Below are positions 1,141 to 40,145 of a stretch of 64,000 nucleotides of DNA, piece by piece. Within the stretch, counting starts at the first letter, position 1, and the number at the start of each line of letters is the position of its first letter. The position numbers and the translations under genes are program-made. A model generated the notes under the pieces. It did not search any database. It saw only the letters and a program-made list of their open reading frames with translations, and was not told the DNA's origin. Origin of the DNA: Macrostomum lignano (taxonomy: Eukaryota); NCBI GenBank assembly GCA_002269645.1, contig NIVC01000460.1, positions 310,001-374,000 on the forward strand. Direction: 5' to 3'.

Positions 1141-3010
1141 GCGATTACGCGAGCAGACGCAGCGTCTCCCAGCCAGTTTACAGGACACAGATACGCAACC
1201 CGACAGACCTCGGGCAGACTACGGATTGTTCATTCGAGGGCGTAAATCAGGAAGACCCGTCGTCCACCTATAGGCTGGTTACAGTGGGCAACAACCTTAG
1301 AGCTTGGGACTGCCAAGCCATTTTGTCCGGGTTTTATACCAAGGAGGGAGAATATTTTACTAGCGAATGCTAACAGCGTTGGGTGGTGACTGATCGGTTG
1401 ACAGACTAGGCAATGTGTCCTGTGCTTGAGCTGAGTTTAATATTTAGAGTGGTCCAGTTCCACCTGTCGTAGCCCTTGAAGGTCCAGCAGTCCGTCAAGA
1501 TAAAGGTAGGTGACCACCGAAGACGGAGATTATGCAGGCACATTCGGGTGACATGCTGATAAATTTTGAAGGCCTGGTGTAGTGTGAGCATCTTTTGCGA
1601 TAGCCTTGTATTCTATTAGTTAGGTTTTGCATTATTGTTATTGAATTATTATTTTGCTTTAGTTTAGTCATACGTTTTTGGTGTACTTTTTCCTTGTTAG
1701 TTAGAATCAATTTTGCGTAAACAGGTTAGAGTTAGACGCCAATTTTGTGACTCAGCGGAGGGTTGAGTTTGTCTGCGAACCCCAGCTTTGCGCGGCCAGC
1801 CAATCAGAACCGGCCTGGACCCTGGCACGCGGCAAGTTTCAATTCTACCCGGCGCCGCGGGCACAGTACAATTCGGCTTAAGCGAGCGGCCGGCCAGACG
1901 ACCACCACCCGGCTTGAGGGGGTTTTGAGGGGTCGTGACTCTGACTATATATGAAAGTGTGTTTTGGCAATCGGATCTCGCTTGCTCCCTTTCCCCGGTT
2001 TTGCCTTGTCCAGTTCCCGGCCGGTGGCCTGTTTCCCCTCGATTCGCGCTTTGAGGCGTTTTGATTTCATCACCCCCGGTCCATATTTTTTGTTCCCGCC
2101 CAACCGCAGTAGTCTTGTGGCGTAACGTCTACGGCAAATTTCTGTCTGAAGTCGTCGCTATCAAGCGCGGTTAGATAGAGACTGTCGGATCTGATCAAGT
2201 ACGCGGCCTCGACCCCGAGGGCCTCAGTGTTACACTGAAGGGCAGTGCCGATAGAATTTAGTCGGTACTCCGTTGAACGGTCGATTCGGCAGGGCTCTCG
2301 TTTGAGTGTAGGTCTGGCTTAGGCCAGGGGTTAGGAGTCTTTCTCCGTGGTCCTGTGTTCGGTGCCTTCTCCTTCTTCTTCTTCAGCCGAGATCCGCTTG
2401 TCAGTGCGTAATATAATCATTATTAATCGTTATTATTCGTTATCATCAGTCTAATTATCTGCGTCGCGAATTGCTTGAATCCTGTAACTTGCGTAATCAA
2501 ATTAAACCGTCTAGCCAATTATCAGTTGTATCACATAGGATTATCACTCTCTAAATCTTTCGGTTTGTGTTCCCTCGTGTTCTTTCTTTTCTTGTACTGT
2601 ACCTGCGGCTATTGGAGAAAGACTGGTAGGACTCGCCGACCGGCGATAGGCGATTAGGATTAATAGCTTTAAAATCTCTGACGCTCCAAGTAGGTTTGTC
2701 TAGGGCCTAAATAATTGCTCACCGTGCATGCTATTATCTAATTGCCTTTTTATCACACTGGCAAGGCCGCACTGGGGCGCAGTGCTAGTTCGTGTGTAGG
2801 GGCGTATGAAATACACTAGCGCTTATAGGAAAAACCCCACCTTCGGCCAGAACCAATGAATATCTCGACGGTCTCAAGAGCTGGCGACTTGATTCTTGTT
2901 TCAGAAGATGCGCAACAAAAATTTGGCCCGTGTTCTTGAGTTTCGTTTGCTGGCGTTGCTCCGTTCGGGTGCTGCATAAAAATTTGTCTGGGGGGTGGGG
3001 GGAGAAATCC
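1141..3010 (+). mobile_element. Probable internally deleted LTR-retrotransposon remnant (BEL/Pao-like)
   Basis: CCAAT- and TATA-like motifs at about 1800-1955. ...ATCACA is followed by a TGG PBS-like site at 2759. A frameshifted peptide GDLILVSED...LARVLE (2883-2940) resembles the BEL/Pao integrase C-terminal segment, followed by a G-rich polypurine tract (2990-3006). No second LTR is seen and the left boundary is uncertain. Confidence 0.35.
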
Positions 3011-3211
3011 CCCATTGGTATTTCTACTGTTAAATGGCAATAGCCGTAGAGCCAGAAGCTGCAGCAACTTGTCCTATGACTGCTTAATTGTCTTTTACTG
3101 AATTGTCTTTTCCGCGCCTAAGACAGCTGAAACCCGATCCATAGGACTCCTCTCAGTCAATGCTCCTTGAGCGGGTCTGCAGTAGTGTCACAGTTTTGTT
3201 TTTATTTCTAG

Positions 3212-3452
3212 AAAAAAAGACTAAACGAGTTGGAGAGACGACGAGGAAGTCCAGTCTTCGATACTACTCTACTGGGTGCCCCAGCTATTGTGCCGAGCTG
3301 CTGCCCGCTGGCTTGCATCAGAGGGACTGACCGTCTCCGACCGTCCTCTCTCCGGTGCTGCAGCCGTGAGTGAAGATTCAGCTGTCCCGCACTGCGAAAT
3401 GCTTGGCCAATGCAAACAAGCAAAATTTGCTTGGCCACTGCTGACAGCTAAT
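3212..3452 (+). pseudogene. Array unit 1: degenerate exon of the unidentified N-terminal region
   Basis: Shares ACTACTCTACTG (TTLL) and LASE with 11130-11200. Ends ...LLTAN|GTGAGT, matching ...LLTAH|GTGAGT at 16393. Confidence 0.45.
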
Positions 3453-3629
3453 GTGAGTGGACTGCTCTCCTGACTACCTGCCTTTGGTGATAGAGGTCTC
3501 AGGGACAATTTTCTTTGTTCTAGTACACAGCACATGCCTTATATTGGAGTGTCCTGTGTGCTGCTACAGAATTGAAAATTCGGAATATCGGAAAAGGTAC
3601 CAGCAGTTCCAGGTTTCCTGTTCCAAAGA

Positions 3630-4060
3630 CTGGGATCAGGGACTCATCTCTCATCTCTCCCCTGTCTCATCTCTCTCTCCCCTGGGATCAGGGACTCATC
3701 TCTTATCTCTCCCCTGTCTCATCTCTCTCTCCCCTGGGATCAGGGACTCATCTCTCATCTCTCCCCTGTCTCATCTCTCTCTCCCCTGGGATCAGGGACT
3801 CATCTCTCATCTCTCCCCTGTCTCATCTCTCCCCTGGGATCAGGGACTCATCTCTCATCTCTCCCCTGTCTCATCTCTCCCCTGGGATCAGGAACTCATC
3901 TCTCATCTCTCCCCTGTCTCATCTCTCCCCTGGGATCAGGGACTCATCTCTCATCTCTCCCCTGTCTCATCTCTCCCCTGGGATCAGGGACTCATCTCTC
4001 ATCTCTCCCCTGTCTCATCTCTCCCCTGGGATCAGGGACTCATCTCTCATCTCTCCCCAG
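3630..4060. repeat. 48-bp chimeric minisatellite (CTGGGATCAGGGA joined to CTCATCTCTCCCCTGT-type units)
   Basis: CTGGGAT recurs at 3834 and 3882 (48-bp period). The unit combines the two neighbouring repeat families. Confidence 0.9.
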
Positions 4061-4064
4061 CCCA

Positions 4065-4295
4065 GTGGGATCAGGGGCTGGGATCAGGGACTGGGGTCAG
4101 CAGGGACTGGGATCAGGTACTGGGGTCAGGGGCTGGGATCAGGGGCTGGGATCAGGGGCTGGGATCAGGGGCTGGGATCTGGGGCTGATATCAGGTGCTG
4201 GGATCAGGGGCTGGAATCAGGGGCTGGGATCTGGGGCTGATATCAGGTGCTGGGATCAGGGGCTGGGATCAGGGGCTGGGATCAGGGGCTGGGAT
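4065..4295. repeat. 13-bp minisatellite (CAGGGGCTGGGAT)n, left part
   Basis: Tandem unit visible. It continues at 5590-5970 after a transposon insertion. Confidence 0.93.
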
Positions 4296-5589
4296 TAGGG
4301 GTGTTCGGGTCGGCCATTTTTTCGGGGTTCGGGGTTTACCCCGAAACCGGTACCCCTACCCCGAACCCCGAACCCCGTCCCGAACATTTCTTCTAACCCC
4401 GAACCCCGAACCCCAAACCCGGTACCAAAACCCGACCCGACCCCGAACGTAACCCCGAACATTTTCACGCTTATTTTGGTCAATCATTTTAATAAATTCA
4501 GTTTTCAGTTTTCAATTTTTCAGTTTTCAGTTTTGAATTTCAGTTTTAAATTCAGTTTTATATATTGAGATGTGCCTTAACAGCTTCAACCACTTAGCCT
4601 TGTGGTTTTATTTCCCTTAGCTACTCTACAACTAGGAAAAGAAATATGAAACACTTCTTGCAATGGTATTGGGATTGAGATGGAAGGATTACCAAGACCC
4701 AAGATCTAATAGTAAGATACATGAAAGTTCACAACTAAAATCAGGACCATTTCGTACCTATACTTACAACGAAATTGCTTTCATAGTAATATTACATCTA
4801 TGAGTTTATTTAAGCTGCAAAAATAGAGTACAATAAAATTAGATTATACCCTGTAGTGTAGATATCAGTAGAGATAGAACGATAAAGAGATGGCACAGAT
4901 AAAACAATGAAACAATGAAACGGGAGAGTTAATCACAAATATATATTTATTTTTACTTTTGACTACAGTTAACAGTAAGTCAGTAGTGGTATAACAGAAT
5001 TGCTATGTAAAAACTAAAGTGACGTCTTTACATAAAATTGTATGCTGATATGAGTAGGTAATCATTGTGATAATTGATTATTGGCGACTGATGCGTGGAG
5101 AATAATGGTGTATTTATAAATTTTAAGCTTCCTCATCCAATCCAGAAGTTCAGACCATGTTACACGTAGCACATGTAAAATTATTACTGAACGTAATTTT
5201 TTTAATCATCAACTGCAAGACTGAATGGGTCGAAAAACGTCAATCGTTATTTACCAGAAAGTGTAAATGAATCCATGGTTCTATCTGCTATTTCCGTTTC
5301 AAATTGTATGTAAAATATAACTTAATTTGTACCTGAAACTCAATGCATATCTTTCGCATTGTGGATTTTGCATAAGGAGCAAAAAGTGCTTGAAAATACT
5401 CTTGAGAATGATAATTGTTCAAAACCCCGAAAACCCCGAAAACCCGGTGGCCAAACCCGACCCGAACCCCGAACCCGGTACCCCTACCCCGAACCCCGAA
5501 CCCGACCCGGAACACCTACCCCGAACCCCGAACCCGGTACCAAAACCCGACCCGAAACCCGACCCGACCCCGAACCCCGAACACCCCTA
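4296..5589. mobile_element. Non-autonomous hAT-type DNA transposon (1294 bp)
   Basis: 14-bp TIR TAGGGGTGTTCGGG/CCCGAACACCCCTA. 8-bp direct repeat GCTGGGAT at 4288-4295 and 5590-5597. Subterminal CCCGAA repeats at both ends; AT-rich interior with no transposase ORF. Confidence 0.85.
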
Positions 5590-5970
5590 GCTGGGATCAG
5601 GGGCTGGGATCAGGGGCTGGGATCAGGGGCTGGGATCAGGGGCTGGGATCAGGGGCTGGGATCAGGGGCTGGGATCAGGGGCTGGGATCAGGGGCTGGGA
5701 TCAGGGGCTGGGATCAGGGGCTGGGATCAGGGGCTGGGATCAGGGGCTGGGATCAGGGGCTGGGATCAGGGGCTGGGATCAGGGGCTGGGATCAGGGGCT
5801 GGGATCTGGGGCTGATATCAGGTGCTGGGATCAGGTGCTGGGATCAGGGGCTGGGATCAGGGGCTGGGATCAGGGGCTGGGATCAGGGGCTGGGATCAGG
5901 GGCTGGGATCAGGGGCTGGGATCAGGGGCTGGGATCAGGGGCTGGGATCAGGGGCTGGGATCAGGGACTC
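5590..5970. repeat. 13-bp minisatellite (CAGGGGCTGGGAT)n, right part
   Basis: Tandem unit visible. Confidence 0.95.
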
Positions 5971-5996
5971 CCTGGGATCAGGGAATGGGGTCAGGG

Positions 5997-6853
5997 ACTG
6001 CTTGAATGTGGCGGCAAATGAGGAGGGGAGTGAGGCCACTCGGGCAACAGTTGCAACAGTTAAAGAAAAATGGCAAAAGACAGCAAAAGAAGCAAAAGAA
6101 GCAAATGGCAAAAGAAGCAGCAAAACTTGCTACACAGCATTCTGAGACTGCAATGCGAGAGGCGATGGAGGCAGCAGAACTGACACCTGATAAAGTACAA
6201 CCCAGCATAGTCACGATTTCTGAGATGAGCGGAATCCCGGCGCTAGACAATTTTCATTAAAAATTAGGAGAGAACTGGCGGATTCTTTCAATTCCTCAGA
6301 TAGAATAGTCACAGCCTACAACAGCCATGTCTGGGAATTACAAGAAATACAAGGAAGAGATTGCATCATATCCGTCAATGGCCGCTATCTCTTGACGAAG
6401 CTCAAGATGAAAACAAACGGAATGCTCTCGGCCTACTTTTCCGTGCGTCTGCCACATAAGGCGAACAAGAAAAAAAAGACTGAAGTTTGCGGATTCATAA
6501 AAAAGGCGATTAAGGAATGTTGTACTGATGCGCACTTGGTAATGATCGCTGGCGATTGGAACATGGAGCCAGTCAAAATAAGAAACTTTCTCGCCGACAT
6601 ATCGCCCCAGCTGGCTTTCCAAGTTGGTCGAACAAACGATTTAAGAAGCAAAAAAGGCTGACTGATCGACAACTTTGCACTGATTGATCAGCGACCCAAT
6701 AGAACGGCCAGCTTCGGCGCGAAGAGGATAATGAATGAGATGCAAGTCGAGAAAGTCACGACTCATGCTCCGATCTGGGCAGAGAGAGGTTCGACTCACC
6801 CCGAGCAGAGAGGAATGAACTCTCAAGAGTCTAGCAGATGCAATCGAGAATAG
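5997..6853 (+). pseudogene. Array unit 1: Ala/Lys-rich helical segment plus C-terminal EEP (endonuclease/exonuclease/phosphatase) domain, disrupted
   Basis: Motifs QPSIVTISE, AGDWN (6551), IDNF and TTHAPIW (6758). Disruptions: TAA at 6258, a frameshift near 6285, TGA at 6659, and a frameshift in the helical part. Confidence 0.75.
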
Positions 6854-7544
6854 AAACTGACACGGTTTTAATCATTAGTATTGTTTGTTAGGAACTATTT
6901 ATCAATATTTATCGACTTGACCTAAGCTTTCCTTAGAAATATCAATGACAGGCAAAAGGATTATTTCAATGGCTGTTGAGTTTTATATCTTTTTCTGATG
7001 ATCCGCCAATGATACTCCCACATCATTTCATCTCATTTCTTAATTTTATTCCAGTGGCATGCCAAATTTAAGGGTAATTTCCTTGTACGCGAAATTGTTT
7101 CTTGCCTTATGCCTTAGTGATGCCTTAGTGATTTTATTTCTTGTGCGATTCTGTTGCAGAGGAAATCAATACTAAACAGAACCTACGTGCCTGCCTGCCT
7201 CACTGCTTTCTAGGGCAGTGGTAAACATGAAACCTTCTTTGTTCTTTGCATTTGAGCTCAACTCATTGAGAATTTGTAACTAAAGAAAATAAGCATGATG
7301 CATATACAAACCTTAAAATGCTTACACATTGCCAACACGGACTACTTAATTGTCGTTTATTGTCTACTTAAGTAGTCCGTGATTGCCAAGTACACATGCG
7401 TGTGTAATATTAAATGTACTCATAATGGCCATTACATTAGCCTCCAAGTGGCGTGCCAGAGCCCGACATTGCAGAAAAAGAGAAAATTGGTCCCATATTC
7501 TCGCCAGCAGAGTTCCCACCCCCAACAGTAATCCCATCCTGTCA

Positions 7545-8350
7545 GTAGGAATCAAATTTCTCTACATAAATCCCATCATATTCACAGAAATCCCATCCCA
7601 TCAGCAGAAATCCCATCCTCTCAACATAAATCCCATCCCATCAGCAGAAATCCCATCCTATCAGCAGAAATCCCATCCAATCAGCAGAAATCCAATCCCA
7701 TCTACAGAAATCCCATCCCATCTACAGAAATCCCATCCCATCTACAGAAATCCCATCCCATCTACAGAAATCCCATCCCATCAGCAGAAATCCCATCCTA
7801 TCAGCAGAAATCCCATCCCATCAGCAGAAATCCCATCCTATCAACATAAATCCCATTCCATCTACAGAAATCCCATCCCATCTACAGAAATCCCATCCCA
7901 TCAGCAGAAATCCCATTCCATCTACAGAAATCCCATCCCATCAGCAGAAATCCCATCCTATCAGCAGAAATCCCATCCCATCAGCAGAAATCCCATCCTA
8001 TCAACATAAATCCCATTCCATCTACAGAAATCCCATCCCATCAGCAGAAATCCCATCCTATCAACATAAATTCCATCCCATCAGCAGAAATCCCATCCTA
8101 TCAGCAGAAATCCCATCCCATCAGCAGAAATCCCATCCTATCAACATAAATCCCATTCCATCTACAGAAATCCCATCCCATCAGCAGAAATCCCATCCTA
8201 TCAACATAAATCCCATTCCATCTACAGAAATCCCATCCCATCAGCAGAAATCCCATTCCATCTACAGAAATCCTATCCCATCAGCAGAAATCCCATTCCA
8301 TCTACAGAAATCCCATCCCATCAGCAGAAATTCCATCCGATCTACAGAAA
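7545..8350. repeat. 20-bp minisatellite (TCAGCAGAAATCCCATCCCA)n with variants
   Basis: Tandem unit visible. Confidence 0.95.
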
Positions 8351-8409
8351 TGCTGTTAAAAGGAAGTCCTAAACTCCTGATGGGATGCCATATTCCATAC
8401 TCAAAATGG

Positions 8410-8545
8410 CATAAATGGCACTCAGTATACGCCATACTCATACTTTTCTGACCGCCGTATAATGACAGAGCTGCGAAACGTATGGACAACGCATACTCCG
8501 ATCAGGGCGGTGGTTCGACTTCCTGCAATGATGCCTGAGTCGCCT
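8410..8545 (+). pseudogene. Fragment of the EEP C-terminus from another paralogue
   Basis: RIMTELRNVWTTHTPIRAVVRLP aligns with WIMNEMQVEKYTTHAPIWAEVRLT at 14461-14535. Confidence 0.65.
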
Positions 8546-8559
8546 TACATTCAGGAACT

Positions 8560-9684
8560 ATGCTATCAGTTAGAGAGAAGCACATTTATAATCAGGATCT
8601 GCAGCAGAATTATTTGGATGGCCAGTACTCGCAGTCTGGGCACCCGGCACACATCTCAAAGCTATCCATCACAGAATCAGTTCTACGGAGGACGGCTTTT
8701 AACCTGCCTGGCCTGACTACCTTGTCTCATCTCTCTACTGTCTCATCTCTATCCAGTCTCATCTCTCTATCCTGTCTCATCTCTCTATCCTGTCTCATCC
8801 CTCCCCTATCTCATCTCTCTATCCTGTCTCATCTCTCCCCTATCTCATCTCTCTATCCTTTCTCATCTCTCCCCTATCTCATCTCTCTATCCTTTCTCAT
8901 CTCTCCCCTATCTCATCTCTCTATCCTGTCTCATGAGACATCCAATGCGGTCCACTGTCATTTTTTGGATCCTCTCTTTGGCCCGCGAGCTGTGTGTCGA
9001 GATTGCTCGCAAATGTACGAATATATGGGATGAGACAACTTTGTGGCTTCATTTGAAAACCTCAAAGGAAAGAGTCTTCCCGGTGGGCTGATTGAAATAG
9101 CCTTTGCGGCGGCAACGCAGGCATCAGCGAGAGCTTTAGACGCGGTGATTTTGCTGACACCGAATGGATTGCAGCCGGCACGTGCAGCAACGACATTGAT
9201 GGAGCGAATTGATGAGGCAATCAATGCGGTAACGACTTTGATGGAGCTAACTAATGCGGCGATGAGTTTTCACGAATCTTTGAATCAGTCAAAAGATGCG
9301 GCAAATAAATCTCTGCAATTCATGAATGAGACGAAGGTTACGGTATTCATGCTTGAGAATGTTCAAGATGCCGAGAGAGCATCAATACGAAGTATAGAAC
9401 TTATTGTCGACGGATCGATGCGTCAGGCACGTGTTGAGGTAATAAAATCCCAGGAGTCTATGAGTAAGGCAGGGAGTTGTCTGGAGCTTATCAGGAACAT
9501 AATAAATAAGGAAAACTTTTTTGAGGAGTCAACGAAAACAGAAAAATGGGCGAAAAGCGCGGATTCTCAGGCGGTTTCAATAGATGAAAGGTACAGGGAG
9601 GCAATGGTTGCGGCTGAGACTGCAGTTACGCATTTTCAGCCGGAAATAACGGCGAAATATACTCGTATAATTTTTTTTAACTAA
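8560..9684 (+). pseudogene. Array unit 2: N-terminal region (HIYN...ITES...VCRDC) plus PGGLIEIA helical segment, lacking the EEP C-half
   Basis: ORFs 8560-9033 and 9043-9684 share one frame, split by a single TGA. PGGLIEIAFAAATQA matches PSGLVEITFSAATQA (17149) and AGGLREIAKLAAAQA (about 12475). A minisatellite sits at 8720-8935. Confidence 0.6.
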
Positions 9685-10029
9685 CTCATTAATTAGGTTG
9701 CGGTAAACGCATATCATCAACGTGTTTTGATTGTGTGCAGCAAATTAAACTCAAGTGTGTTCTTCTACATTAGTTCAGATTAATGGATACCTGAATGACA
9801 TCAAAGCCATTGGATGGGTGCTTAATCAAGTGTCATAGAACATAGTCTCCTGCCAGGAGAGAGATGAGACAGGATAGACATGACATAGACATAGTCTCGT
9901 GCCTCATCTCTCTCCTGTCTCATCTCTACGCTACATGTAGCGGTTTTGTTGGAATCAAAGCAATGAAAGTCGTTAGTCGATCTTTCTCAGTGCCTCTCCT
10001 AATGTTAGTGCAGTAACTGCCTCTCTACA

Positions 10030-10640
10030 GTTACACGTTACAGGAGAGATGAGACAGGGGATGTGAGACAGGAGAGAGATGAAACAGGAGAGAGATGAGA
10101 CAGGAGAGAGATGAAACAGGAGAGAGATGAGACAGGAGAGAGATGAGACAGAACAGAAGAGATGAGACAGGATAGAGAGATGAGACAGGAGAGAGATGAG
10201 ACAGGAGAGAGATGAGACACAGAAGAGATGATACAGGAGAGAGATGAGACAGGAGAGAGATGAGACAGGAGAGAGATGAGACAGGAGAGAGATGAGACAG
10301 GAGAGAGATGAGACAGGAGAGAGATGAGACAGGAGAGAGATGAGACAGGAGAGAGATGAGACAGGAGAGAGATGAGACAGGAGAGAGATGAGACAGGAGA
10401 GAGATGAGACAGGAGAGAGATGAGACAGGAGAGAGATGAGACAGGAGAGAGATGAGACAGGAGAGAGATGAGACAGGAGAGAGATGAGACAGGAGAGAGA
10501 TGAGACAGGAGAGAGATGAGACAGGAGAGAGATGAGACAGGAGAGAGATGAGACAGGAGAGAGATGAGACAGGAGAGAGATGAGACAGGAGAGAGATGAG
10601 ACACAGAAGAGATAAGACAGGAGAGAGATGAGATAGGACG
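10030..10640. repeat. 16-bp minisatellite (ACAGGAGAGAGATGAG)n, reverse-oriented relative of the 1-1140 family
   Basis: Tandem unit visible. Confidence 0.96.
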
Positions 10641-10699
10641 GAGATGAGTTACAATACGTGGGTGCTAGGTAAAGCAGTCTACCTGAGAAGCCCGGCTCT

Positions 10700-11269
10700 C
10701 CCAGCAGCCGTACATTTATAATCATGTTGCAAACGAATATGGCAATCTTCAACTACTTTGCAATCGTCATGCATGCATGAGTGTGAAAGAGTGGCGAGTC
10801 ACCGAGAGTGAAAGTTTAATTCTTGGAGCCAGAATTAGCACTTGCATGCGCAAAGGTAAAAGTTCAGTCCTCCAAGTGCAATTCTCGCAGACCTGTGCCC
10901 ATCAGCTGGTGTTGCCGTCAGCAGTTCTATCGCCGACCTATGCTCGCCCTTGGAGTCCAGCAGTCCATGTTCAGGCTGGTTTGACTCGCCTTATCATACG
11001 ACCACCCTTGCGCCCTCAAGTGTTTTTTCGCTCGGTTGCCTCGGTGTAGGGCTGTTGGGTCGCTTCAGGTATTCACGTGGTGGACTCTGGGCTGACCACT
11101 GCACTAAATACTGCGTATTGAAGTGCGCACTACTCTACTGTTTTGTAAGTAGTGCATCGCGAATATTCACACGACGATTGCTGAGTTGCTGGCCAGCGAG
11201 TCAAGGTGAGCCACTGTGACGCAGATGCAGCTGGGCAAGATTGCTTTTGAGCTGCGTTTCGGGCTCAAC
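10700..11269 (+). pseudogene. Array unit 3: degenerate N-terminal region
   Basis: YIYNH...RVTESESLILG resembles HIYNQ...SITES (unit 2) and ESIVLG (unit 4). TTLL...LASE...KIAF resembles unit 1. Ends at a GTGAGT donor; multiple stops. Confidence 0.45.
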
Positions 11270-11354
11270 GTGAGTTCCTCAGTCCAGCGGATTTTTATTT
11301 AGAGCGCGGACTTGTTGCTTTCCGAACGAAAATCGGCAACAACAGCCAGAACAA

Positions 11355-11600
11355 AGCTGACAAACAACATGGAACTGGGGTCAGTGACTGGGGTCAGTGA
11401 CTGGGGTCAGTGACTGGGGTCAGTGACTGGGGTCAGTGACTGGGGTCAGTGACTGGGGTCAGTGACTGGGGTCAGTGACTGGGGTCAGTGACTGGGGTCA
11501 GTGACTGGGGTCAGTGACTGGGGTCAGTGACTGGGGTCAGTGACTGGGGTCAGTGACTGGGGTCAGTGACTGGGGTCAGTGACTGGGGTCAGTGACTGGG
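11355..11600. repeat. 13-bp minisatellite (CTGGGGTCAGTGA)n
   Basis: Tandem unit visible. Confidence 0.95.
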
Positions 11601-11714
11601 TCAGTGGCCATGAGGTCAGGGACAGTCGTCAGGGACTGGGTCAGGGATTGGGGTCAGGGACTGGGGTGAGGACCTGAGTGAGGGATGTGGGTCAGGGACT
11701 GAGGTCAGGAACTG

Positions 11715-12275
11715 GGTCAGGGACTGGGATCAGTGGCCAGAAGATCAGGGACTGGGATCAGTGGCCAGAAGATCAGGGACTGGGATCAGTGGCCAGAAGA
11801 TCAGGGACTGGGATCAGTGGCCAAAAGATCAGGGACTGGGATCAGTGGCCAAAAGATCAGGGACTGGGATCAGTGGCCAGAAGATCAGGGACTGGGATCA
11901 GTGGCCAGAAGATCAGGGACTGGGATCAGTGGCCAGAAGATCAGGGACTGGGATCAGTGGCCAGAAGATCAGGGACTGGGATCAGTGGCCAAAAGATCAG
12001 GGACTGGGATCAGTGGCCAGAAGATCAGGGACTGGGATCAGTGGCCAAAAGATCAGGGACTGGGATCAGTGGCCAGAAGATCAGGGACTGGGATCAGTGG
12101 CCAGAAGATCAGGGACTGGGATCAGTGGCCAGAAGATCAGGGACTGGGATCAGTGGCCAGAAGATCAGGGACTGGGATCAGTGGCCAGAAGATCAGGGAC
12201 TGGGATCAGTGGCCAGAAGATCAGGGACTGGGATCAGTGGCCAGAAGATCAGGGACTGGGATCAGTGGCCAGATC
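11715..12275. repeat. 28-bp minisatellite (GGGACTGGGATCAGTGGCCAGAAGATCA)n
   Basis: Tandem unit visible. Confidence 0.95.
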
Positions 12276-12371
12276 AGGGACTGGGGTCAGGGACTGGGGT
12301 CAGGGTCTGGGGTCAGTGGCCATGAGATCAGGAACTATCTGACTGTGACCCGCATTTTTATCACCCCCCAG

Positions 12372-14550
12372 GCTGAAGGATGGCTGCCGGGGACGCAAAG
12401 CCGACTTCAAGTTCTTGGCGTTGGCCATCAACGCGGACGGTTCAAATCGACGAGAAGAGCTGAAGGGGGACAAACGCCGGTGGACTGCGCGAGATCGCCA
12501 AGCTGGCGGCAGCGCAGGCGGCCATGCCGGAGAAGGCGGAAGCCCTGGCGGCTTTGCACGTCTCACAGCATGCGTCAAGAAAGGCGAAGGAGGCCATCAA
12601 AACGGCAAGAGAGGCATCAAAGGAGGCGGTAGTGAAAGCAGCGCATGCGTCAGAAGCGGAATTGGGGGAAGCAGAGGAGAAATTTAAGGAGGCAAGAGAG
12701 AAAGCGGAGAAGGCGGCAAATGTGAATTGGCAGGAGGTAGAGAAGCAAGCAGAATCTGCGGCAGAGTTTTCTCAGACTGCGATGCAAAAGGCAAGGAGGC
12801 GGCGATGAAGGCGGCAACCTACAATAAAGTACAGCTCAGCATAGTTACGATTTCGGAAATGAGCAGAGAGAAGGCACTAAATAAATTTGTAACCGAGTTA
12901 GGTTAAAGTTGGGATAAACGCTCGTGTTGTGTCACTACACGTGATTGAACAGCTCCCTAAGATTGTTCTGCAGCGAACGAGCCTGGAGATGGCGTCAGCC
13001 CACTGACCGGACTGACTCCGCTACTGAGCGTAGGATCGCGTCGAGGTAAGGCAGTCAGTCCGTCCCTAGAGCGTACGGTACCCACTTTGCTCGAGATCCA
13101 AATGATTAATGAACACAGACGCGAGTCTTACTTTGACTTCCAATCGGCACGGCGGTAAGCAAGGCAGCGAGTTCGTATTGAGATTTCGATATTGCAGTTT
13201 GTTGATTCCGTAGAGTCTAGTGCCAGGTGTCAACGGGCACACGCTCACCCTGCCCACCGCCAGCAATTCTCTATTTATTTAGGCTGCCTGGCGTAGGCCC
13301 TAGGGTCTCACGCCAGACAGCATTATCAACAACCAACTTGTTGGCCAATCACCAATTGACAAGGGACAAGGGAATTGACAAGTGCTAACAAAAAGGGGAG
13401 AGAGGGGCCAGGCCAGCCAATCCGGCTGGGTACGCATAATAAGAAAAAGGGGCAGAGAATAAGGGTTGATACACAACTGGGGGGGGGGGTTTACGCAGAC
13501 AGAATGGGGGGGGGGTTGGCGCAGGCACGCGGCCAGGGGGGTTGGGAGTGCAGTGCCGGGCACACTTGACCGAGAGCCAGAGATTGCTCATCGGTGCAAG
13601 TGCACCCGGGCACAACACCCTCCCCCACCACAAAAAGAGGGTTCATACCATAGACTAAAAATTAAAGTGCATAAAAGTTTCGCACTCCCGACATCAGTTG
13701 AGCCGGCAGGGTCTTGTCGCCGCGCTCCGCTGCCAGCCAAGTCGCCGTCGTCCGTCGGTTTTCCTGGGTTTTCCGCAAACGGTGCTGATGATGCTAGCAG
13801 GAGCCGCTCCGAGGGCAGGGCAGCGATGCGTCGCGCATGCCAGCTGCTGTGTACCAGCCGAGCGGTGACCTTGAACTTGAGGCCCGGTAACGTAGCCAGG
13901 TACAGCCCTAGAGTGTCTACGGGCCAGTACGACGACTCGGTGACTAGAATGCGACCTTTCACGACGCCATTGTCGCCGGGAAGTTGCACGAACTCGTACA
14001 CTCGCACTGTTTCAAAAGCAATTCTGCAGATAGGATAGTCACGGCCTTCAACACATACGTCTGGGAATTGATAAGCACAAAAGATAAAGAAGAGTTCATA
14101 GCGTCTGACAATGGCCGCTATCTGATAACAAAGCTCAGGATGAGAGCAAACGACATGATCTTGGTCTACTTCTCTGTGCATCTGCCACACAAGACAGGCA
14201 AGGACAAAGCTTATCAGTTGATAAAAGGTGCTATTCAGGAATGTTGCTCTGATGCAGCCTTCATTATGATTGGTGGCGACTGGAACATGGAGCCTGAAAC
14301 TATTGCAGAGGAATTCAGAAAAATTCAACATAAGCTCGCCTTCAATACCAATGATGGCCGAACTAGCGCTGAAAGTGTAGAAAACGCAATCGACAACTTC
14401 GCACTGATGGCTGGGTCATCCAGTGAAGCACAGCTGTGGACACCATGCTTTGGCTCGAAGTGGATAATGAACGAGATGCAAGTCGAGAAGTACACCACTC
14501 ATGCTCCGATTTGGGCGGAGGTTCGACTTACCCCCAGAAATGAGGAATGA
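12372..14550 (+). pseudogene. Array unit 3: most complete split-EEP gene (N-motif, helical insert, EEP C-half), interrupted by an LTR element
   Basis: 3' splice site with a CTGAC branch point before 12372. Motifs FLALAINADG (N at 12430), SIVTISE (E at 12856), VYFSVHLPH, GGDWN (14275), IDNF (14389) and TTHAPIW (H at 14500). Two single-base frameshifts, TAA at 12904 and a 1083-bp insertion. Confidence 0.8.
12925..14007 (-). mobile_element. Truncated LTR retrotransposon: 3' internal fragment, PPT and one 693-bp LTR
   Basis: LTR 12925-13617 is bounded by TGTTGTG...CACAACA. Polypurine tract GTGGTGGGGGAGGG on the minus strand (13618-13631) abuts the LTR. Removing 12925-14007 restores the host reading frame (RS-CFKSNSADR). 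Confidence 0.8.
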
Positions 14551-14639
14551 AACAATTGACTGTTGAATTGCTTAACCTGGTTTCTAATTTTAACTCTAGT
14601 GCTATTTTGTGCCTTGTACTCGTAAAATGCCAAGTAAGT

Positions 14640-14800
14640 TTTGAGTAATGACTGGTGAATGGTGAATTGGTGACTTGGTGAATTGGTGAATGGGGAATTG
14701 TGAATGGTGATTGGTGAATAGTGAACGGTGAATGGTGAATAGTGAATGGTGAATGGTGAATAGTGAATGGTGAATGGTGAATAGTGAATGGTGAATGGTT
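14640..14800. repeat. Degenerate (GGTGAAT/AGTGAAT)n repeat
   Basis: Tandem unit visible. Confidence 0.85.
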
Positions 14801-14971
14801 CGCTTAATTTGGCGATTCCTTACACCCGCATCGCTATTTTCATAGCCATGTTTTTCTCGTCAACCGTCAAGTTTAGCTACGAGCTACTACTGCAAGTCAG
14901 TAGCAATCCAAGAACAATTAAATATAAAAATCAGGTAAAGTGGCTCGCTTGATGAAGAGTAGATAAATAAA

Positions 14972-15374
14972 GGTAAATATCAACATGAAGTATTATTTGA
15001 GTTGCCGATGCATTTCGTCCATTTGCATTAGGACATCGTCAGGGTCTTTTTATTTAAGAAACAAAAATTTGCGATGGGTGGGGCCAGCCGTCAACTCAGA
15101 ATTTTTTAGCTGATTTGTCAATGACCGGACTGGCTTGAAACTGATATGCACTTTACCCAACCAATACTGTATCAAAAAATTGATTACTATGTACAAGTTT
15201 TAAGCCATCAATTAAAAACTCAATTCAACTACTCTTGTTACTCTCAACTATATATATATATATACTGAATATTCGTTCAAATTGTTTCTCAATAAAAAGA
15301 CCCTGACGATGTCCTAATGCAAATGGACGAAATGCATCGGCAACTCAAATAATACTTCATGTTGATATTTACCT
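14972..15374. mobile_element. MITE with about 95-bp TIRs (possibly Kolobok-like)
   Basis: AGGTAAATATCAACATGAAG... is mirrored at 15284-15374. Flanked by TAAA (left) and TTAA (right). Confidence 0.7.
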
Positions 15375-15797
15375 TTAATTAAATCTAAAACAAAAAATGC
15401 AGCAGGATTGAAATCCTTTGTTCAATGACCTTCCCTATTATGCAAAAAAGTTTACAGTCATAGTGGTTGAGTTCGTTTCCTCAACCACTATCCTCAACTT
15501 CTAAAAGTTATGCAAAAGCCGCCAAAGATGCGAAAAATCTTGCTTTCCAAAAGTACACTCTTGACACTGGACAAACTTGTGCTTTTCAAATTCTTAAAGC
15601 ATTAAAAAAAACTGCATCCACAATGGACGCGCATACTACTGCTGACAGTAGCGACTGGCCAAGAGTTGGAAACAGTCTATGCAGTAGTCTATGGTAAATT
15701 CTATACTAAAAACACGAATATCCGTCGTGAACGAATGAACTGACACTGCCCGACGAATCCATGGAGGCCTTGGATAAGCCTAATGTGAATCAAGTTG

Positions 15798-15907
15798 AGT
15801 AGTGGTAGGTATTATATTGGATGGGAGCCATTCACACTCGCTTTGCTCGCTCGTTCACTCGTTCATTCTTCACTTGATGTCCATCCAATATAATACCTAC
15901 CACTACT
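15798..15907. mobile_element. 110-bp hairpin MITE with 27-bp perfect inverted repeats
   Basis: AGTAGTGGTAGGTATTATATTGGATGG and its reverse complement. Confidence 0.65.
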
Positions 15908-16674
15908 ATAAATATATTTTTTAAAAACCTGCAATTTTAATGATTGGAATTTTACCCCCCCCCCTCTTAGAGTGCTTCTGGAGGCCATTTTGGGGTGATT
16001 CTTGAGTCATGAGTCAGCTGGTGTGTCCAAAATGTCTTCACATTCTATTCATATTTTATTACATTATATACATATACGCTCGTATATCCCTATATTATAA
16101 AATTGCTAAGGGACTTTTTTAAGTCAGCTGACTCATTAAGAATAGCTATGCATCCCCAACAGTACGTTTTGGATAAAGGGGGAACTTCAACACAGCACTG
16201 TACAGTCTCCATTGTTTTCGCAGTACTCAGAAAAGGGAAGTTGCTCTGTACTCTCAAAGAGTCTATTGTTCTTGGAAAGGGCAACCTCCCGTGTAGCGTA
16301 TATAGTATGTAATTTTGGCTTGCGTACTGCAGAGACTGCTTGGACTCCCCCAGTAGCTGCGCCGATTCACCACGATAATTGCTGACAGCTCATGTGAGTG
16401 ACTGGCCACCTGACTGCCTTTGGTGATGGAAGTGTCTGGGGACAGTGTTCTGTGTGCTAGGAGCAGGGACTGGGATCAGAAACTGGGGTCAGGGTCAGGG
16501 ATTAGGGACTGGGATCAGAGATCAGAGACTGGGATCAGAGATCAGAGACTGGGATCAGGGACTGGGGCCAGGGACTGGGATCAGGGATAAGAGACTGGGA
16601 TCAATGACCAGAAGATCAAGGACTGGGGTCTAGTACACAGCTAGTAAACAGCACATGCCTCATATTGGACACTG

Positions 16675-16870
16675 TTTTGTGTGCCAGTACACAGCACTGT
16701 GTCAGGTTTCTATGTGCCAGTACACAGCACTGTGTCAGGTTTCTATGTGCCAGTACACAGCACTGTGTCAGGTTTCTATGTACCAGTACACAGCACTCTG
16801 TCAGTGTTCTGTGTGCCAGTACACAGCACTCTGTCAGTGTTCTGTGTGCCAGTACACAGCACATGCCTTA
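16675..16870. repeat. 33-bp intronic tandem repeat (GTGCCAGTACACAGCACTGTGTCAGGTTTCTAT)n, about 6 copies
   Basis: Tandem units without spacers. A related single copy occurs near 3520. Confidence 0.9.
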
Positions 16871-17299
16871 CATTGGACAGTGTTCTAAGTTTTTTACCAC
16901 ATGTAAAAACTGTCAGATATGAGTTTGAAGTCTTTCTCATGATACATTTTACGATTTTTCCACAAAAGGTGGCTTTAGTGTTGGAGGAACTGAGATATGT
17001 GACTTTGGGATTAGGGACTGTCTAACGGTGACCCGTATTTTCATCACCCGCAAGGCCGTGAAGTATGGCGACCACGCTTGACAACTCTGACTGCACTAGT
17101 TTCTTGGCGCTGTCCATCAACGCGGACGCTTCAAAACATGACATGTTTCCTAGTGGACTGGTTGAAATAACATTTTCAGCTGCAACGCAAGCCGAAAAGG
17201 TCTCAAAAGTAGCGAGTGAGTATTGGAATAAGGTGGCAACGCAGGCCACTGAGAAAGTGAAGGTGGGGACTACGAAGTGGCAGAAGGTGAAGAATGAGT

Positions 17300-17712
17300 T
17301 AAAGGAGAAGAAGGAGAAGGAGAAGAAGAAGGAGAAGAAGGAGAAGAAGGAGAAGGAGAAGGAGAAGAAGGAGAAGAAGAAGAAGGAGAAGAAGGAGAAG
17401 GAGAAGGAGAAGAAGGAGAAGGAGAAGAAGAAGAAGGAGAAGGAGAAGAAGAAGAAGAAGGAGAAGAAGGAGAAGGAGAAGAAGAAGAAAGAGAAGGAGA
17501 AGAAGAAGAAGGAGAAGAAGGAGAAGGAGAAGAAGGAGAAGAAGGAGAAGGAGAAGAAGGAGAAGAAGGAGAAGGAGAAGAAGAAGAAGGAGAAGGAGAA
17601 GAAGGAGAAGAAGGAGAAGGAGAAGGAGAAGAAGGAGAAGGAGAAGAAGGAGAAGGAGAAGAAGGAGAAGGAGAAGAAGAAGAAGAAGGAGAAGAAGGAG
17701 AAGGAGAAGAAA
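17300..17712 (+). repeat. (AAG/GAG)n trinucleotide repeat encoding a Lys/Glu tract
   Basis: In frame with ORF 17065-17718. Confidence 0.95.
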
Positions 17713-18516
17713 CTGTAAAAGCGGTAGCATCAAAACATTCTGTCAATGACAATGCGTTCCAAACTCTTCTTGAAGCAAACGTAGTGAAATCCCAAGTTAG
17801 ATATTTCAGTTTTCTGTCGTAATGCTGTAATGCAACAACAAATATCAAAATTTCAAGTGTTTTCAAATCTCAATGAGCCAATCAACAGAATGCTTCTCCT
17901 ATTACTAATGTTATTATTGTTACATTTGATTTTGTTGTGTCCTCATCAATTGAAAATTTTCCACCATTTTCTGCTGAGTCCATTAAACTTAAAATTTGCT
18001 TCTAGGACGCTCTAACAGTAAGTGATGAAGCACGACCTAAGATTTTTAGTGATTGTTGTGCGCTATATTTTATTGATTTATTTGACAAAAGAACTCTTAT
18101 TTAACCAACAGATTAGACTTTTTTTTCCGCAATACACAAGATAATACACAATATTAAAGCTCCCTGACGATCATAAACACACAGAAACATTTCGTTTTTT
18201 CTCCTTCCTTCATAATTTCAATTTCTTCATTTGATTCTTTCACTTCTAATCGATTGAAGTTTTATGGGTACTACATAAGAATTTGTTAATTTGTTAATTT
18301 ATTAATTTGTTAATTTGTTACTTTGTTAATTTATTAATTTGTTAATTTGTTAATTTGTTAATTTGTTAATTTGTTAATTTGTTAATTTGTTAATTTAAAA
18401 CACAATTTAATGAATATTGTACCATGACCTTTGTGCCCGCTGGGCACTTATTCTTGCCTTTTAATGCCATAGACTACATTTAAGCCCGCTTGCAGGAGTC
18501 AAACTTACTTTAATTC

Positions 18517-19029: not shown

Positions 19030-20170
<1,141 letters not shown>

Positions 20171-20314: not shown

Positions 20315-22776
<2,462 letters not shown>

Positions 22777-23089: not shown

Positions 23090-25889
<2,800 letters not shown>

Positions 25890-25908
<19 letters not shown>

Positions 25909-27052
25909 TCCCAGATCCTGATCCCAGATCCTGATCCCAGATCCTGATCCCAGATCCTGATCCCAGATCCTGATCCCAGATCCTGATCCCAGATCCTGAT
26001 CCCAGATCCTGATCCCAGATCCTGATCCCAGATCCTGATCCCAGATCCTGATCCCAGATCCTGATCCCAGATCCTGATCCCAGATCCTGATCCCAGATCC
26101 TGATCCCAGATCCTGATCCCAGATCCTGATCCCAGATCCTGATCCCAGATCCTGATCCCAGATCCTGATCCCAGATCCTGATCCCAGATCCTGATCCCAG
26201 ATCCTGATCCCAGATCCTGATCCCAGATCCTGATCCCAGATCCTGATCCCAGATCCTGATCCCAGATCCTGATCCCAGATCCTGATCCCAGATCCTGATC
26301 CCAGATCCTGATCCCAGATCCTGATCCCAGATCCTGATCCCAGATCCTGATCCCAGATCCTGATCCCAGATCCTGATCCCAGATCCTGATCCCAGATCCT
26401 GATCCCAGATCCTGATCCCAGATCCTGATCCCAGATCCTGATCCCAGATCCTGATCCCAGATCCTGATCCCAGATCCTGATCCCAGATCCTGATCCCAGA
26501 TCCTGATCCCAGATCCTGATCCCAGATCCTGATCCCAGATCCTGATCCCAGATCCTGATCCCAGATCCTGATCCCAGATCCTGATCCCAGATCCTGATCC
26601 CAGATCCTGATCCCAGATCCTGATCCCAGATCCTGATCCCAGATCCTGATCCCAGATCCTGATCCCAGATCCTGATCCCAGATCCTGATCCCAGATCCTG
26701 ATCCCAGATCCTGATCCCAGATCCTGATCCCAGATCCTGATCCCAGATCCTGATCCCAGATCCTGATCCCAGATCCTGATCCCAGATCCTGATCCCAGAT
26801 CCTGATCCCAGATCCTGATCCCAGATCCTGATCCCAGATCCTGATCCCAGATCCTGATCCCAGATCCTGATCCCAGATCCTGATCCCAGATCCTGATCCC
26901 AGATCCTGATCCCAGATCCTGATCCCAGATCCTGATCCCAGATCCTGATCCCAGATCCTGATCCCAGATCCTGATCCCAGATCCTGATCCCAGATCCTGA
27001 TCCCAGATCCTGATCCCAGATCCTGATCCCAGATCCTGATCCCAGATCCTGA
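25890..27052. repeat. Highly homogeneous 13-bp minisatellite (CCTGATCCCAGAT)n
   Basis: About 89 near-identical units. Confidence 0.98.
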
Positions 27053-27535
27053 TTAGCAAAATCATACACTGATTTGACCTCTGACTTACTAATTTAATAA
27101 ACTAATCCAGAATATTATACACTTAACACTATAGCACGAAACACCTTGTATTCAATCTGGCTTAAATGCTTTGTGTTTGCTTTTTCAAACGTAACTGACA
27201 TATCGATAAATAGATAGAAACAACTTTTTTAGTAGTACATGTAGATTTTTTTTCATATTTCAGTTTAAAAACACAGCGACGACTCTGATCTCGCACTCTA
27301 TATTTTTCCATTTAATTTTTTCCTGCTTTTACATATGGACCCATTGCCTCAAAAGTGCATCGAATGAAACTAGTCGAGCCGGGCAAATTTTTCGCCTAAT
27401 TGAACTGTATTCCCTCGCGATTTGCTTGCACTGTCTATGGCCCGGGGCCCGGGGCAAAAGCAATGCTGATGAGCGTGTTTTCCCCCGAGGCATTGAAATG
27501 TGCAACAAGAACGCTAAATAGACAGCGGATCCGGT

Positions 27536-31004: not shown

Positions 31005-32110
31005 ATACAAAAATGGGGTTAAATGGCTACCCTAAGTCCTTGGCATACACAATCGCATACACAACCCCTGGCGAAATTTGTTGGTATACACTATTGGTGT
31101 ACACAATAACACAGCCATGCATACTTTTTTGGCGTACAAATTTTGGTGAATAAATTCATGCCATACATGAAAATTGTAATATAAATTAATGTTTTTACGT
31201 AAAGTAACGGAAAATTTATATCGTTAGGGATAAAATTTTTGCTTCTTTGTAATTAGCAATAAATAAAACTAGTGTAAATTTTTGCTAAGAGTATCAATTT
31301 TGCATCATATTTTTTGTAGGTATAATTTAATTATACTAAATTAGTAGGCCTATCATTGGTGACAATTATAGAGACTACTTTATAAACTCAAGACAAGTTA
31401 ATATAATAGTATCTAATTATACCTAAGGTTTGATATTCAATTCTCAACTTACTTAGAATAATTTGTGTCTTCAGGAAAGACAGGAACTTGTACCTTTCTG
31501 CATTGCTTTGGTTTACTTAGTTATAAAATAGGTAATACAATTAACTAGGATGATTGAGAGCATATGTGGTGACCCCCCTTCCCCTAGTCTTTATACTATA
31601 TAGCTATATATAGGTAGCCTTTAGATACATTGCACAAAAACTATAGCTAAGTTGGTTACATATCTAGCCTATTTGGGGTAGGTATAATCACACTGTATTG
31701 AAAAGAAATATGTATTATAATTATATAAGACTAAGAGTGTTTTTAGTTTGAAAATCAATAATATCTACTTTAAAATTGAAAAAATAAATATTCTAAGCAA
31801 CAAATAAACTACTTTTATTAAACTAAAAAACTTTATTAAAATTTTTTAATAAAGTTTTAAAGTTTTTAAGTTTTAAAGTTTAAAGTTTAAAGTTTTAATA
31901 AAGTTATTAAAACTTTATTAAAAACTTTTATTAAACTACAAAGAAACTAAAAATAGAAATATTCTAATAATAATACGTAAAATAAGAGCAGTATGGCTTA
32001 TATAATGTGCACTTTGTTATATGCATACTAATAAGGATGCCAACAAGATTTATTAATAGGTTTTAAAAAGAAGAAATAAAAATGTACATAACTAAGTATA
32101 AAAATAAATA

Positions 32111-39250: not shown

Positions 39251-40145
39251 TCTCCTGATGGGTTTTCAGTTACTCAATTTAACCGTTTTCACCATATAGT
39301 TAATTCTCCATTGCCAGTGGGGCAGATTAGTGGTAAGAATCTGTGTTTCATCTTCCTCATCATATTGCACGATTATATATAGTGAATATGGATTGCTATC
39401 CCGCTATAGTTATTTGCTTATCTGTATTTAATGTGCGCGTGATTGTTCAAATGATGCAAAAAATTTACCAAGTAAAATATATCTGCTCGAAAATAAATAT
39501 TTGCTTAATTAAAAGATTACTTTCGAGTTGATTTCTTTCATTTTAGTTTAGTAAGAAAAGTCTGTGTCAGTAAGTAGCTTTGAGTAGCACAGAGGTTCCA
39601 TAGGATGGGTTTATCGGTTGTAGATACCCAATGCAAAGCAGTTATCAACAAGCAAAGTACATAGAGTACTTTTATAGGACACCTTGGCGCAACGCCTTCG
39701 GCAACAACGTCACACTGCAACCCAAAGCTGAGACCAATGGTCGTGGGGGCGAGAGAGTCAGGCCTGTGTTTACCACGAGTACTTTCTCAACTTTGGTTCT
39801 AAGAAATTTGAGCATTGCCTCCTGTCACAAACAGACTGCTCAATAGCAGCTACTCTAACCTGTGCTCCCGCTTCAGTTTGGCCAGAAAAAGTGCACAGCG
39901 CCCCTGATAAGATGGAGTGAGAAAACTTGCATACTCGCTGTTCCTTCATCAACGCAATTTTAATGAAATTAAAACTGTAAAAATGGCTTATCGATATTGC
40001 AGCATATTGAGCTTCGCCTTTCAAACATACTCATCATCTTGTAGTTTAACAACCATACTCGCATTGAATTCGCTCTACGACAAGGCCTGCGTGCATTGAA
40101 AAAGTAACAGACTAGAGACCCAGAATCTTGGCCTCATCATTCGCC

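Follow-up and report, generated by a model that had tools for sequence, protein, structure and literature searches.

A probable tandem cluster of five decayed relics of a small stand-alone EEP (DNase I-like) gene in Macrostomum lignano

The stretch of the Macrostomum lignano genome considered here (contig NIVC01000460.1, positions 310,001 to 374,000 of the forward strand; 64,000 nucleotides, hereafter the window) raises the question of what kind of gene, or former gene, is repeated near its beginning. An earlier note on this DNA had proposed a tandem array of about four diverged paralogues of an unrecognised, split nuclease/phosphatase gene of the endonuclease/exonuclease/phosphatase (EEP) superfamily. 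Our analysis indicates that the region probably holds five decayed relics (pseudogenes), arranged in tandem, of a single ancestral gene, which was small, stand-alone and of the EEP (DNase I-like) type. It is a real yet fairly ordinary pseudogene cluster, and neither a split gene nor a retroelement.

The sole close homologues are the single-exon M. lignano proteins BOX15_Mlig009936g1 and BOX15_Mlig011052g1 (P0001 and P0002, respectively), with a length of 293-296 aa. When they were compared with the window by tblastn, a series of homologous relics was recovered, far above chance (Table 1). All relic pieces are on the forward strand and head-to-tail, forming one cluster in the window. A six-frame regular-expression scan found SIVTISE, GDWN, IDNF, THAPI(W), YFSV, GRYL and LPHK twice each, at the catalytic halves of units 1 and 3, while [F/L]AL.INAD has exactly two occurrences (12415 and 17104) and GL.EI three (9085, 12482 and 17155). 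Besides, self-comparison at the DNA level pairs 6289-6819 with 14019-14551 and, with an identity of 76%, 12323-12446 of unit 3 with 17006-17135 of unit 4. Blocks of non-coding sequence upstream of the units are also homologous, and therefore the duplicated unit took in non-coding upstream sequence.

By these approaches the array of diverged paralogues on one strand is borne out, with five relics rather than about four. What had been taken for a single unit at 8.4-9.7 kb is actually two relics, a C-terminal tail (2a) with an N-terminal/helical piece (2b) downstream of it. The same full order of motifs does not recur in the copies: FLALxINAD is present only in units 3 and 4, with a degenerate form in relic 2b and none in unit 1, and unit 4 ends in a microsatellite without any catalytic part. 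The copies had also been described as far apart in protein sequence, but units 1 and 3 are only moderately diverged (59% amino acid identity over 201 aligned codons). None of the units is intact, as frameshifts, stops, an insertion or a truncation are found in each, and a continuous open reading frame (ORF) from a start codon to the last motif is found in none.

In a search of 5.8 billion proteins, the best match of the catalytic ORF of unit 3 had an E of 6e-27. Over the catalytic half, P0001 and P0002 are 41-43% identical to the window units (E 1e-25 to 1e-34), and they have the same order of motifs (FxALAINAD, SILTVSE, SVHLPHK, GGDWN, IDNF and SHAPI), a stand-alone domain and an acceptor-like CAG directly before the ATG. 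On the other hand, they are intact single-copy genes, with one copy within 10 kb either side at each locus, whereas the window units are tandem and all broken; and they have ~40 residues between the N and E motifs, compared to ~140-200 in the window units. The P0001 paralogue may itself be decaying. At its locus (L005, ~9935-10001, contig NIVC01000386.1) the start codon is ATA instead of ATG; consequently, the annotated protein begins at a later Met, past the N-motif that the DNA still encodes, and is devoid of the catalytic Asn. We found no publication on the M. lignano genes or on Macrostomum EEP proteins.

A profile made from P0002, P0001 and two window halves was run against 1.84 billion representative proteins, resulting in 52 hits at E < 1e-3 (13 at < 1e-10). 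All are short proteins (134-428 aa; 52 clusters at 50% identity), and they include transcripts of Mantoniella beaufortii and Lapot gusevi and metagenome contigs. The Pfam family PF03372 (Exo_endo_phos) matches 19 of the 52 members, with a best E of 6.7e-9, but neither the window ORFs nor P0002, so that their membership is transitive. The window catalytic halves match most members pairwise, as BLASTP against the family set gave 51 of 52 for unit 3 and 44 of 52 for unit 1. In the alignment of the 52 sequences, H143, G175, D176 and N178 are invariant, E57, P145 and N222 are nearly so, and N16 is present in nearly all full-length members; the N, E, H, D-x-N and D-N motifs are conserved in nearly all of the family. 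In the window, the ordered catalytic motifs are all found in unit 3, and unit 1 lacks the N-motif and has Arg in place of the catalytic His. Two distant members of the family (P0004 and P0006, from Logan and JGI) have a Cys-rich N-terminus, MVCGCCGA, reminiscent of lipidation motifs, a motif that neither the window units nor the M. lignano proteins have.

Against the Protein Data Bank (PDB), the family profile retrieved 3g6s (E 4e-4), nocturnin (8e-4) and DNase I (1e-3), followed by ExoIII, sphingomyelinase and TDP2, while a single-sequence phmmer search with the 188-aa ORF gave noise only. In the HMMER profile alignments, the family motifs iNaD, vtlsEv, VHLPhk and GDfNa align with the catalytic N, E, H and D-x-N motifs of the PDB proteins, i.e., FNIRYDN (3g6s), I(V/L)..QEV (3g6s, nocturnin and DNase I), THF/THL/LHS and GDFN. 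The DNase I positions at these motifs are presumably E39, H134 and D168/N170. An AlphaFold2 model of P0002 based on the 52-sequence alignment (pLDDT 89, pTM 0.85) replaced an earlier model made with four sequences (pLDDT 46). With this model, Foldseek retrieved EEP structures only (TDP2, 3mpr, 3g6s, nocturnin, DNase I, DNase1L3, EEPD1 and synaptojanin 5-phosphatase), at E ~1e-11 to 1e-10, TM 0.5-0.69 and 11-16% identity. The search of viral folds in BFVD also gave generic EEP proteins only, at an identity of <=18%, and no closer viral relative. The Pfam matches among the relatives, the motif alignment and the structural comparison support the assignment made earlier, and the gene family belongs to the EEP (DNase I-like) superfamily, with no particular subfamily favoured. 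As to the gene being unrecognised, Pfam indeed does not match the window ORFs or P0002, but the UniRef name of the M. lignano proteins begins with 'Endonuclease/exonuclease/p' (only that part of the name).

TDP2, the nocturnin/CCR4-type enzymes, DNase I and the Bacteroides proteins 3g6s and 3mpr have in common with the P0002 model the four-layer alpha/beta sandwich and the aligned catalytic E, H and D-x-N. However, the identity is just 12-16% and there is no subfamily-specific match, and therefore the substrate cannot be transferred from TDP2, nocturnin or DNase I. The short EEP family also lacks the extra domains of TDP2 (UBA) and CCR4 (LRR). Judging from the fold, the ancestral protein would most likely have been a Mg2+-dependent phosphodiesterase acting on a nucleic-acid phosphodiester.

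Some observations weigh against a cluster of EEP pseudogenes. No EEP match was obtained in the direct Pfam scan of seven window ORFs, and the structural model is of the M. lignano homologue (42% identical) and not of a copy in the window. The 188-codon ORF of the unit 3 catalytic half is intact even now, and recent or partial function would be possible for it from the sequence; the interiors of the insert described below align just weakly between the units.

Since the endonucleases of long interspersed nuclear elements (LINEs) also have the EEP fold, the units might be the endonuclease remnants of a non-LTR (LINE-type) retrotransposon or of another mobile element. The LINE-1 and APE1 endonucleases are members of this superfamily too, with its ordered catalytic motifs, the relic copies are multiple and decayed, and a weak match to PF14529, 'Endonuclease-reverse transcriptase', exists for 2 of the 52 family members (E 0.0018). 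We consider this origin extremely improbable, however. Six-frame translation of the spacers and the insertion (6785-7524, 9685-10043, 10649-11373, 12904-14010 and 14551-16459) gave neither a reverse transcriptase nor any other Pfam domain (E <=0.01), in line with the earlier statement that no reverse transcriptase is adjacent. Outside the repeats and the units, 2500-18500 contains no ORF of >100 aa, with the exception of two ORFs of 190 and 247 aa overlapping unit 3 or its insertion, the shorter of which has no Pfam match. In addition, the homologues are stand-alone proteins with their own start and stop, the M. lignano loci are single-copy as described above, and all units share one orientation and a common upstream non-coding structure. 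The top 50 structural neighbours of the P0002 model are TDP2, nocturnin, DNase I and similar proteins, not APE1 or L1-EN. The short EEP family has His at the position of DNase I H134. APE1 and L1-EN carry Tyr at this position.

The coding region had further been described as split and intron-containing, a reading that the homologues do not support. The M. lignano homologues have a single exon, the start Met lies downstream of the minisatellites, and the breaks in the units are frameshifts, stops and an insertion; as the frameshifts part residues that are contiguous in the homologues, they are not introns. Unit 1 has a frameshift near 6090-6110 in its helical remnant, a TAA at 6258-6260, a frameshift at ~6260-6285, a change of the catalytic His to Arg at 6446-6448 (SVRLPHK in place of the invariant SVHLPHK), a stop at 6659-6661 and a 4-bp AGAG insertion at ~6781-6784, after TTHAPIWAE. 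By three-frame translation and motif scan, it has no ATG and no N-motif upstream of the helical remnant, and aligning its start with the unit 4 N-terminus to define a deletion gave a very poor match. Relic 2b, similar to unit 4 (E 2e-5) and unit 1 (E 0.012), has a degenerate E-motif (PEITAKY) and no catalytic half. Unit 3 is the most complete unit and its catalytic half the best-preserved piece, but three frameshifts (near 12398, 12475 and 12790) and a TAA (12904-12906) disrupt its N-terminal half, and the 1.09-kb insertion follows. This insertion has no Pfam domain, and no convincing terminal inverted repeats or target-site duplications were found around it; the G+C content of 12001-14000 is 0.558. 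Downstream of the unit 4 microsatellite, tblastn and translation revealed neither an E-motif nor a catalytic half. Judged by these lesions, no unit appears able to make an active enzyme now.

Unit 3 at least could still be a live intron-containing EEP gene if splicing removed the 1.09-kb block and the apparent defects. By our own reading, a phase-0 GTAACC at 12889 and an AG at 13982-13983 could join ...NKF to LHELV...; the TAA would then be lost, and the spacing would differ from that of P0002 by no more than one residue. In addition, the 188-codon ORF that follows is intact, and donor- and acceptor-like sites lie upstream of the ATG. This is nevertheless very improbable, because the three other frameshifts, near 12398, 12475 and 12790, fall between residues contiguous in the homologues and cannot be introns. 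Moreover, the segment that such splicing would discard (VTELG*SW) is homologous to coding sequence of unit 1 and P0002, the M. lignano genes have one coding exon each, and unit 3 has no start codon in the frame of its N-motif.

It is likewise very improbable that units 1 and 3 are really intact and that errors of assembly or sequencing in repeat-rich DNA account for the frameshifts and stops. The region is dense in tandem arrays and hard to assemble, and several of the shifts lie within short homopolymer or dinucleotide runs (GGGG, AAAA, AGAG). On the other hand, the window also contains ORFs (1627 and 483 codons) that are free of frameshifts, and with a 4.9-kb (1627-codon) ORF of this kind, three error-made shifts in 0.5 kb of unit 3 are implausible. 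Many of the lesions are also substitutions or large changes (two TAA codons, a third in-frame stop, the His to Arg change and the 1.09-kb insertion), and the missing pieces, namely the unit 1 N-terminus and the catalytic halves of relic 2b and unit 4, are too large for small indels. A non-standard genetic code or programmed frameshifting was rejected as well, because the window contains long standard-code ORFs without an in-frame stop. Decay of once intact copies remains our preferred explanation of the breaks.

The sequence upstream of the units had been taken for a Cys-containing N-terminal exon followed by a minisatellite-filled intron. It is not a conserved coding exon, since tblastx of the upstream regions gave no protein-level similarity and no shared coding potential, and what is conserved is just a block of DNA. 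The minisatellites, for their part, are not within the coding region and would at most fill an intron of the 5' untranslated region (5'UTR). Both units 3 and 4 have an in-frame stop, TGA, two codons ahead of the ATG, and therefore the upstream exon could be 5'UTR only. The start Met of these units (MAAGDAK... and MATTLDNS...) aligns with Met1 of P0002 (MAASKDSA...) and is placed ~10 nt past a polypyrimidine-AG tract, downstream of the minisatellites; at the M. lignano locus L001, CTCTCTCTGCAG directly precedes the ATG. Unit 3 has a possible donor, CAAG/GTGAGC, at 11206, and the segment 3511-3548, after the upstream block of unit 1, also matches 16840-16877 by DNA comparison. A non-coding 5' exon and a minisatellite-accumulating 5'UTR intron would be the most economical model, because the donor and acceptor blocks are conserved and the TGA is in frame before the ATG. 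In unit 1, the putative intron contains, by Tandem Repeats Finder, arrays of 48-bp (3630-4058) and 13-bp units (4066-4301 and 5590-5966) and CCCGAAC repeats (5426-5582). Minisatellites of the CTGGGATCAGGG type also occur far from the cluster, e.g., at 25889-27053, and they are therefore a genome-wide feature and not specific to the EEP gene. The array at 25889-27053 consists of a 13-bp unit (100% matches) which, when reverse-complemented, corresponds to the unit family that precedes the EEP units.

The sole unusual feature is a long Ala/Lys/Glu-rich insert between the N and E motifs, which is lineage-specific and seen in dead copies only. It comprises 100-160 residues without Pro or Gly breaks, and its composition suggests that it would be helical. 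The N-to-E spacing is ~140 residues in unit 3 and ~200 in relic 2b, as opposed to 26-45 in the full-length relatives, and none of the 52 family members has such an insert. Its ends are homologous between the units (GGLxEIxxAAxQA, E 2e-5; ...TAMxxAMxAA...KVQxSIVTISE, E 7e-8 and 0.012), and therefore the insert predates the duplications; the KWQK and TAMREAM anchors of the unit 1 remnant are common to units 3 and 4 and relic 2b. The insert also seeded the (AGAAGG)n microsatellite of unit 4. In the P0002 model its place corresponds to the first helix (residues 28-46), which lies between strands 1 and 2; a helical arm projecting from there may be structurally tolerable. We can imagine the relics as the graveyard of a lineage-specific EEP branch that is still active, with this arm between strands 1 and 2, intact expressed paralogues elsewhere, a turnover through unequal crossing-over driven by minisatellites and a new targeting or oligomerisation function, but we regard this as rather unlikely.

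A role as immune, toxin or conflict effector had been suggested for the family. For units 1 and 3, the ratio of nonsynonymous to synonymous substitution rates (dN/dS, Nei-Gojobori) over the aligned codons is 0.38 (bootstrap 0.24-0.56; dS 0.82, dN 0.31), with the frames corrected for counting only and two sequences allowing no site-wise test. Being below 1, this value indicates purifying and not diversifying selection and gives the effector reading no support, and most of the divergence therefore arose under purifying selection, with inactivation later. We propose a scheme in which the ancestral unit would have had a short non-coding 5' exon, a 5'UTR intron gathering the common minisatellites of the genome and an acceptor ~10 nt before the ATG. 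Its single coding exon would have encoded the N-motif, the helical insert of 100-160 residues, the E-motif and then the H, D-x-N, D-N and H motifs. Several head-to-tail duplications of this unit would have followed, with unequal crossing-over between the minisatellites on its flanks as the most likely mechanism, and the copies would have diverged for long under purifying selection (dS ~0.8, dN/dS ~0.4). They would then have been inactivated one by one, through frameshifts, stops, loss of the catalytic His, the 1.09-kb insertion, and replacement by repeat arrays or truncation.

These findings add a small, patchily distributed and functionally uncharacterised EEP branch, present in a flatworm, a prasinophyte alga, a rhizarian and metagenomes, and the window is a clear local case of gene birth and death within minisatellite-rich DNA. 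With all copies dead, the locus tells little on function and rather points to the M. lignano enzyme family as worth biochemical attention. For annotation, the units are to be called pseudogenes, and not a split gene or LINE fragments.

Table 1. Positions in the window of the tblastn matches to the M. lignano proteins and of the features of each relic.
Feature	Position	Strand	Frame	Evidence
tblastn match, M. lignano proteins	14029-14529		1	E 1e-34
tblastn match, M. lignano proteins	6281-6784		2	E 4e-31
tblastn match, M. lignano proteins	12397-12474		1	E 3e-4
tblastn match, M. lignano proteins	12832-12933		1	E 0.022
tblastn match, M. lignano proteins	8444-8557		2	E 0.025-0.05
tblastn match, M. 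lignano proteins	17089-17133		1	E 0.14
tblastn match, M. lignano proteins	6198-6278		3	E 0.25-0.3
Unit 1, upstream conserved block with GTGAGT splice-donor-like site (GT at 3453), putative end of non-coding 5' exon	3439-3523	+		79% identity over 86 bp with 16380-16460
Unit 1, minisatellite-rich stretch, putative 5'UTR intron	3630-5999	+		Tandem Repeats Finder
Unit 1, Ala/Lys/Glu helical-insert remnant	6000-6206	+	part 2, part 3	three-frame translation
Unit 1, E-motif SIVTISE (6207-6224) and catalytic half	6207-6818	+		tblastn, translation, motif scan
20/40/60-bp minisatellite in place of nearly all of relic 2a	7525-8351	+		Tandem Repeats Finder
Relic 2a, last ~38 codons only (IMTELRNVWTTHTPIRAVVRLP), homologous to H-motif tail	8444-8557	+		tblastn, translation
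Minisatellite upstream of relic 2b	8723-8934	+		Tandem Repeats Finder
Relic 2b, degenerate N-motif FVASFEN, GGLIEIAFAAATQA anchor, ~200-codon helical insert, open 213-codon ORF	9019-9684	+		ORF list, translation, comparison
16-bp minisatellite (GAGAGATGAGACAGGA) between relic 2b and unit 3	10044-10648	.		Tandem Repeats Finder
Unit 3, upstream minisatellites with 13-bp and 28-bp units, related to those of unit 4	11374-12336	+		Tandem Repeats Finder, DNA comparison
Unit 3, splice-acceptor-like tract TTTTTATCACCCCCCAG (12355-12371), in-frame TGA, ATG at 12380	12355-12382	+		conserved in unit 4
Unit 3, N-terminal half: Met, N-motif FLALAINAD (12415-12438), ~110-codon helical insert, E-motif SIVTISE (12841-12858)	12380-12912	+		
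~1.09-kb G+C-rich insertion breaking the unit 3 coding sequence	12913-13998	+		absent from unit 1 and M. lignano genes
Unit 3, catalytic half, intact 188-codon ORF with SVHLPHK, GGDWN, IDNF, TTHAPIW	13984-14550	+		E 6e-27 to P0001
Unit 4, upstream conserved block with GTGAGT donor-like site (GT at 16394)	16380-16460	+		DNA comparison with unit 1 block
Unit 4, minisatellites: 13/20/66-bp units (16460-16603), 33-bp unit (16680-16862)	16460-16862	+		Tandem Repeats Finder
Unit 4, acceptor-like tract (17038-17054), in-frame TGA, ATG at 17065, N-motif FLALSINAD (17104-17127), start of helical insert	17038-17281	+		
Unit 4 end, (AGAAGG)n microsatellite grown from Lys/Glu-rich helical segment	17282-17711	+		Tandem Repeats Finder

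Between units 3 and 4 there is a 101-bp inverted repeat (14964-15064 and 15282-15381), the arms of which are 97% identical and ~220 bp apart, resembling a hairpin or a miniature inverted-repeat transposable element. In the remainder of the window, an uninterrupted 1627-codon ORF on the forward strand (55433-60316) encodes a Gln/Glu-rich coiled-coil with internal 78-bp repeats and a hydrophobic, tail-anchor-like C-terminus. It has no Pfam match, and its last 438 aa gave a single match, at 71% identity, to a protein from the Logan run SRR28338165. The 483-codon ORF (48573-50024, forward strand) is multi-pass-membrane-like, has no Pfam match and gave no homologue at E <=1e-5 among the 5.8 billion proteins. 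Either this is an orphan gene or it is no gene at all. Several poly-Gln-rich ORFs, without a Pfam match at E <=0.01, are found at 34030-35847 and 40128-42467 on the forward strand, and one of them (35332-35847) has a basic-leucine-zipper-like stretch.

A 184-bp interspersed element at 25102-25283, found also in reverse at 31436-31690, is 87% identical to M. lignano DNA at L001 (13390-13560). It was suspected, from its translation, to be a tRNA-derived short interspersed nuclear element, but ARAGORN calls no tRNA in the window; there are no Rfam matches either. The window is rich in tandem arrays, with >20 separate mini- and microsatellite arrays. Just downstream of the cluster lie (AGAC)n, (TTAGTTAG)n/(AGTT)n and (CAGA)n microsatellites, at 19032-20170, 20634-22623 and 23169-23526, respectively. 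The largest tandem array of the window, at 42496-45395, spans 2.9 kb and consists of ~91 copies of a 32-bp unit with 97% matches.

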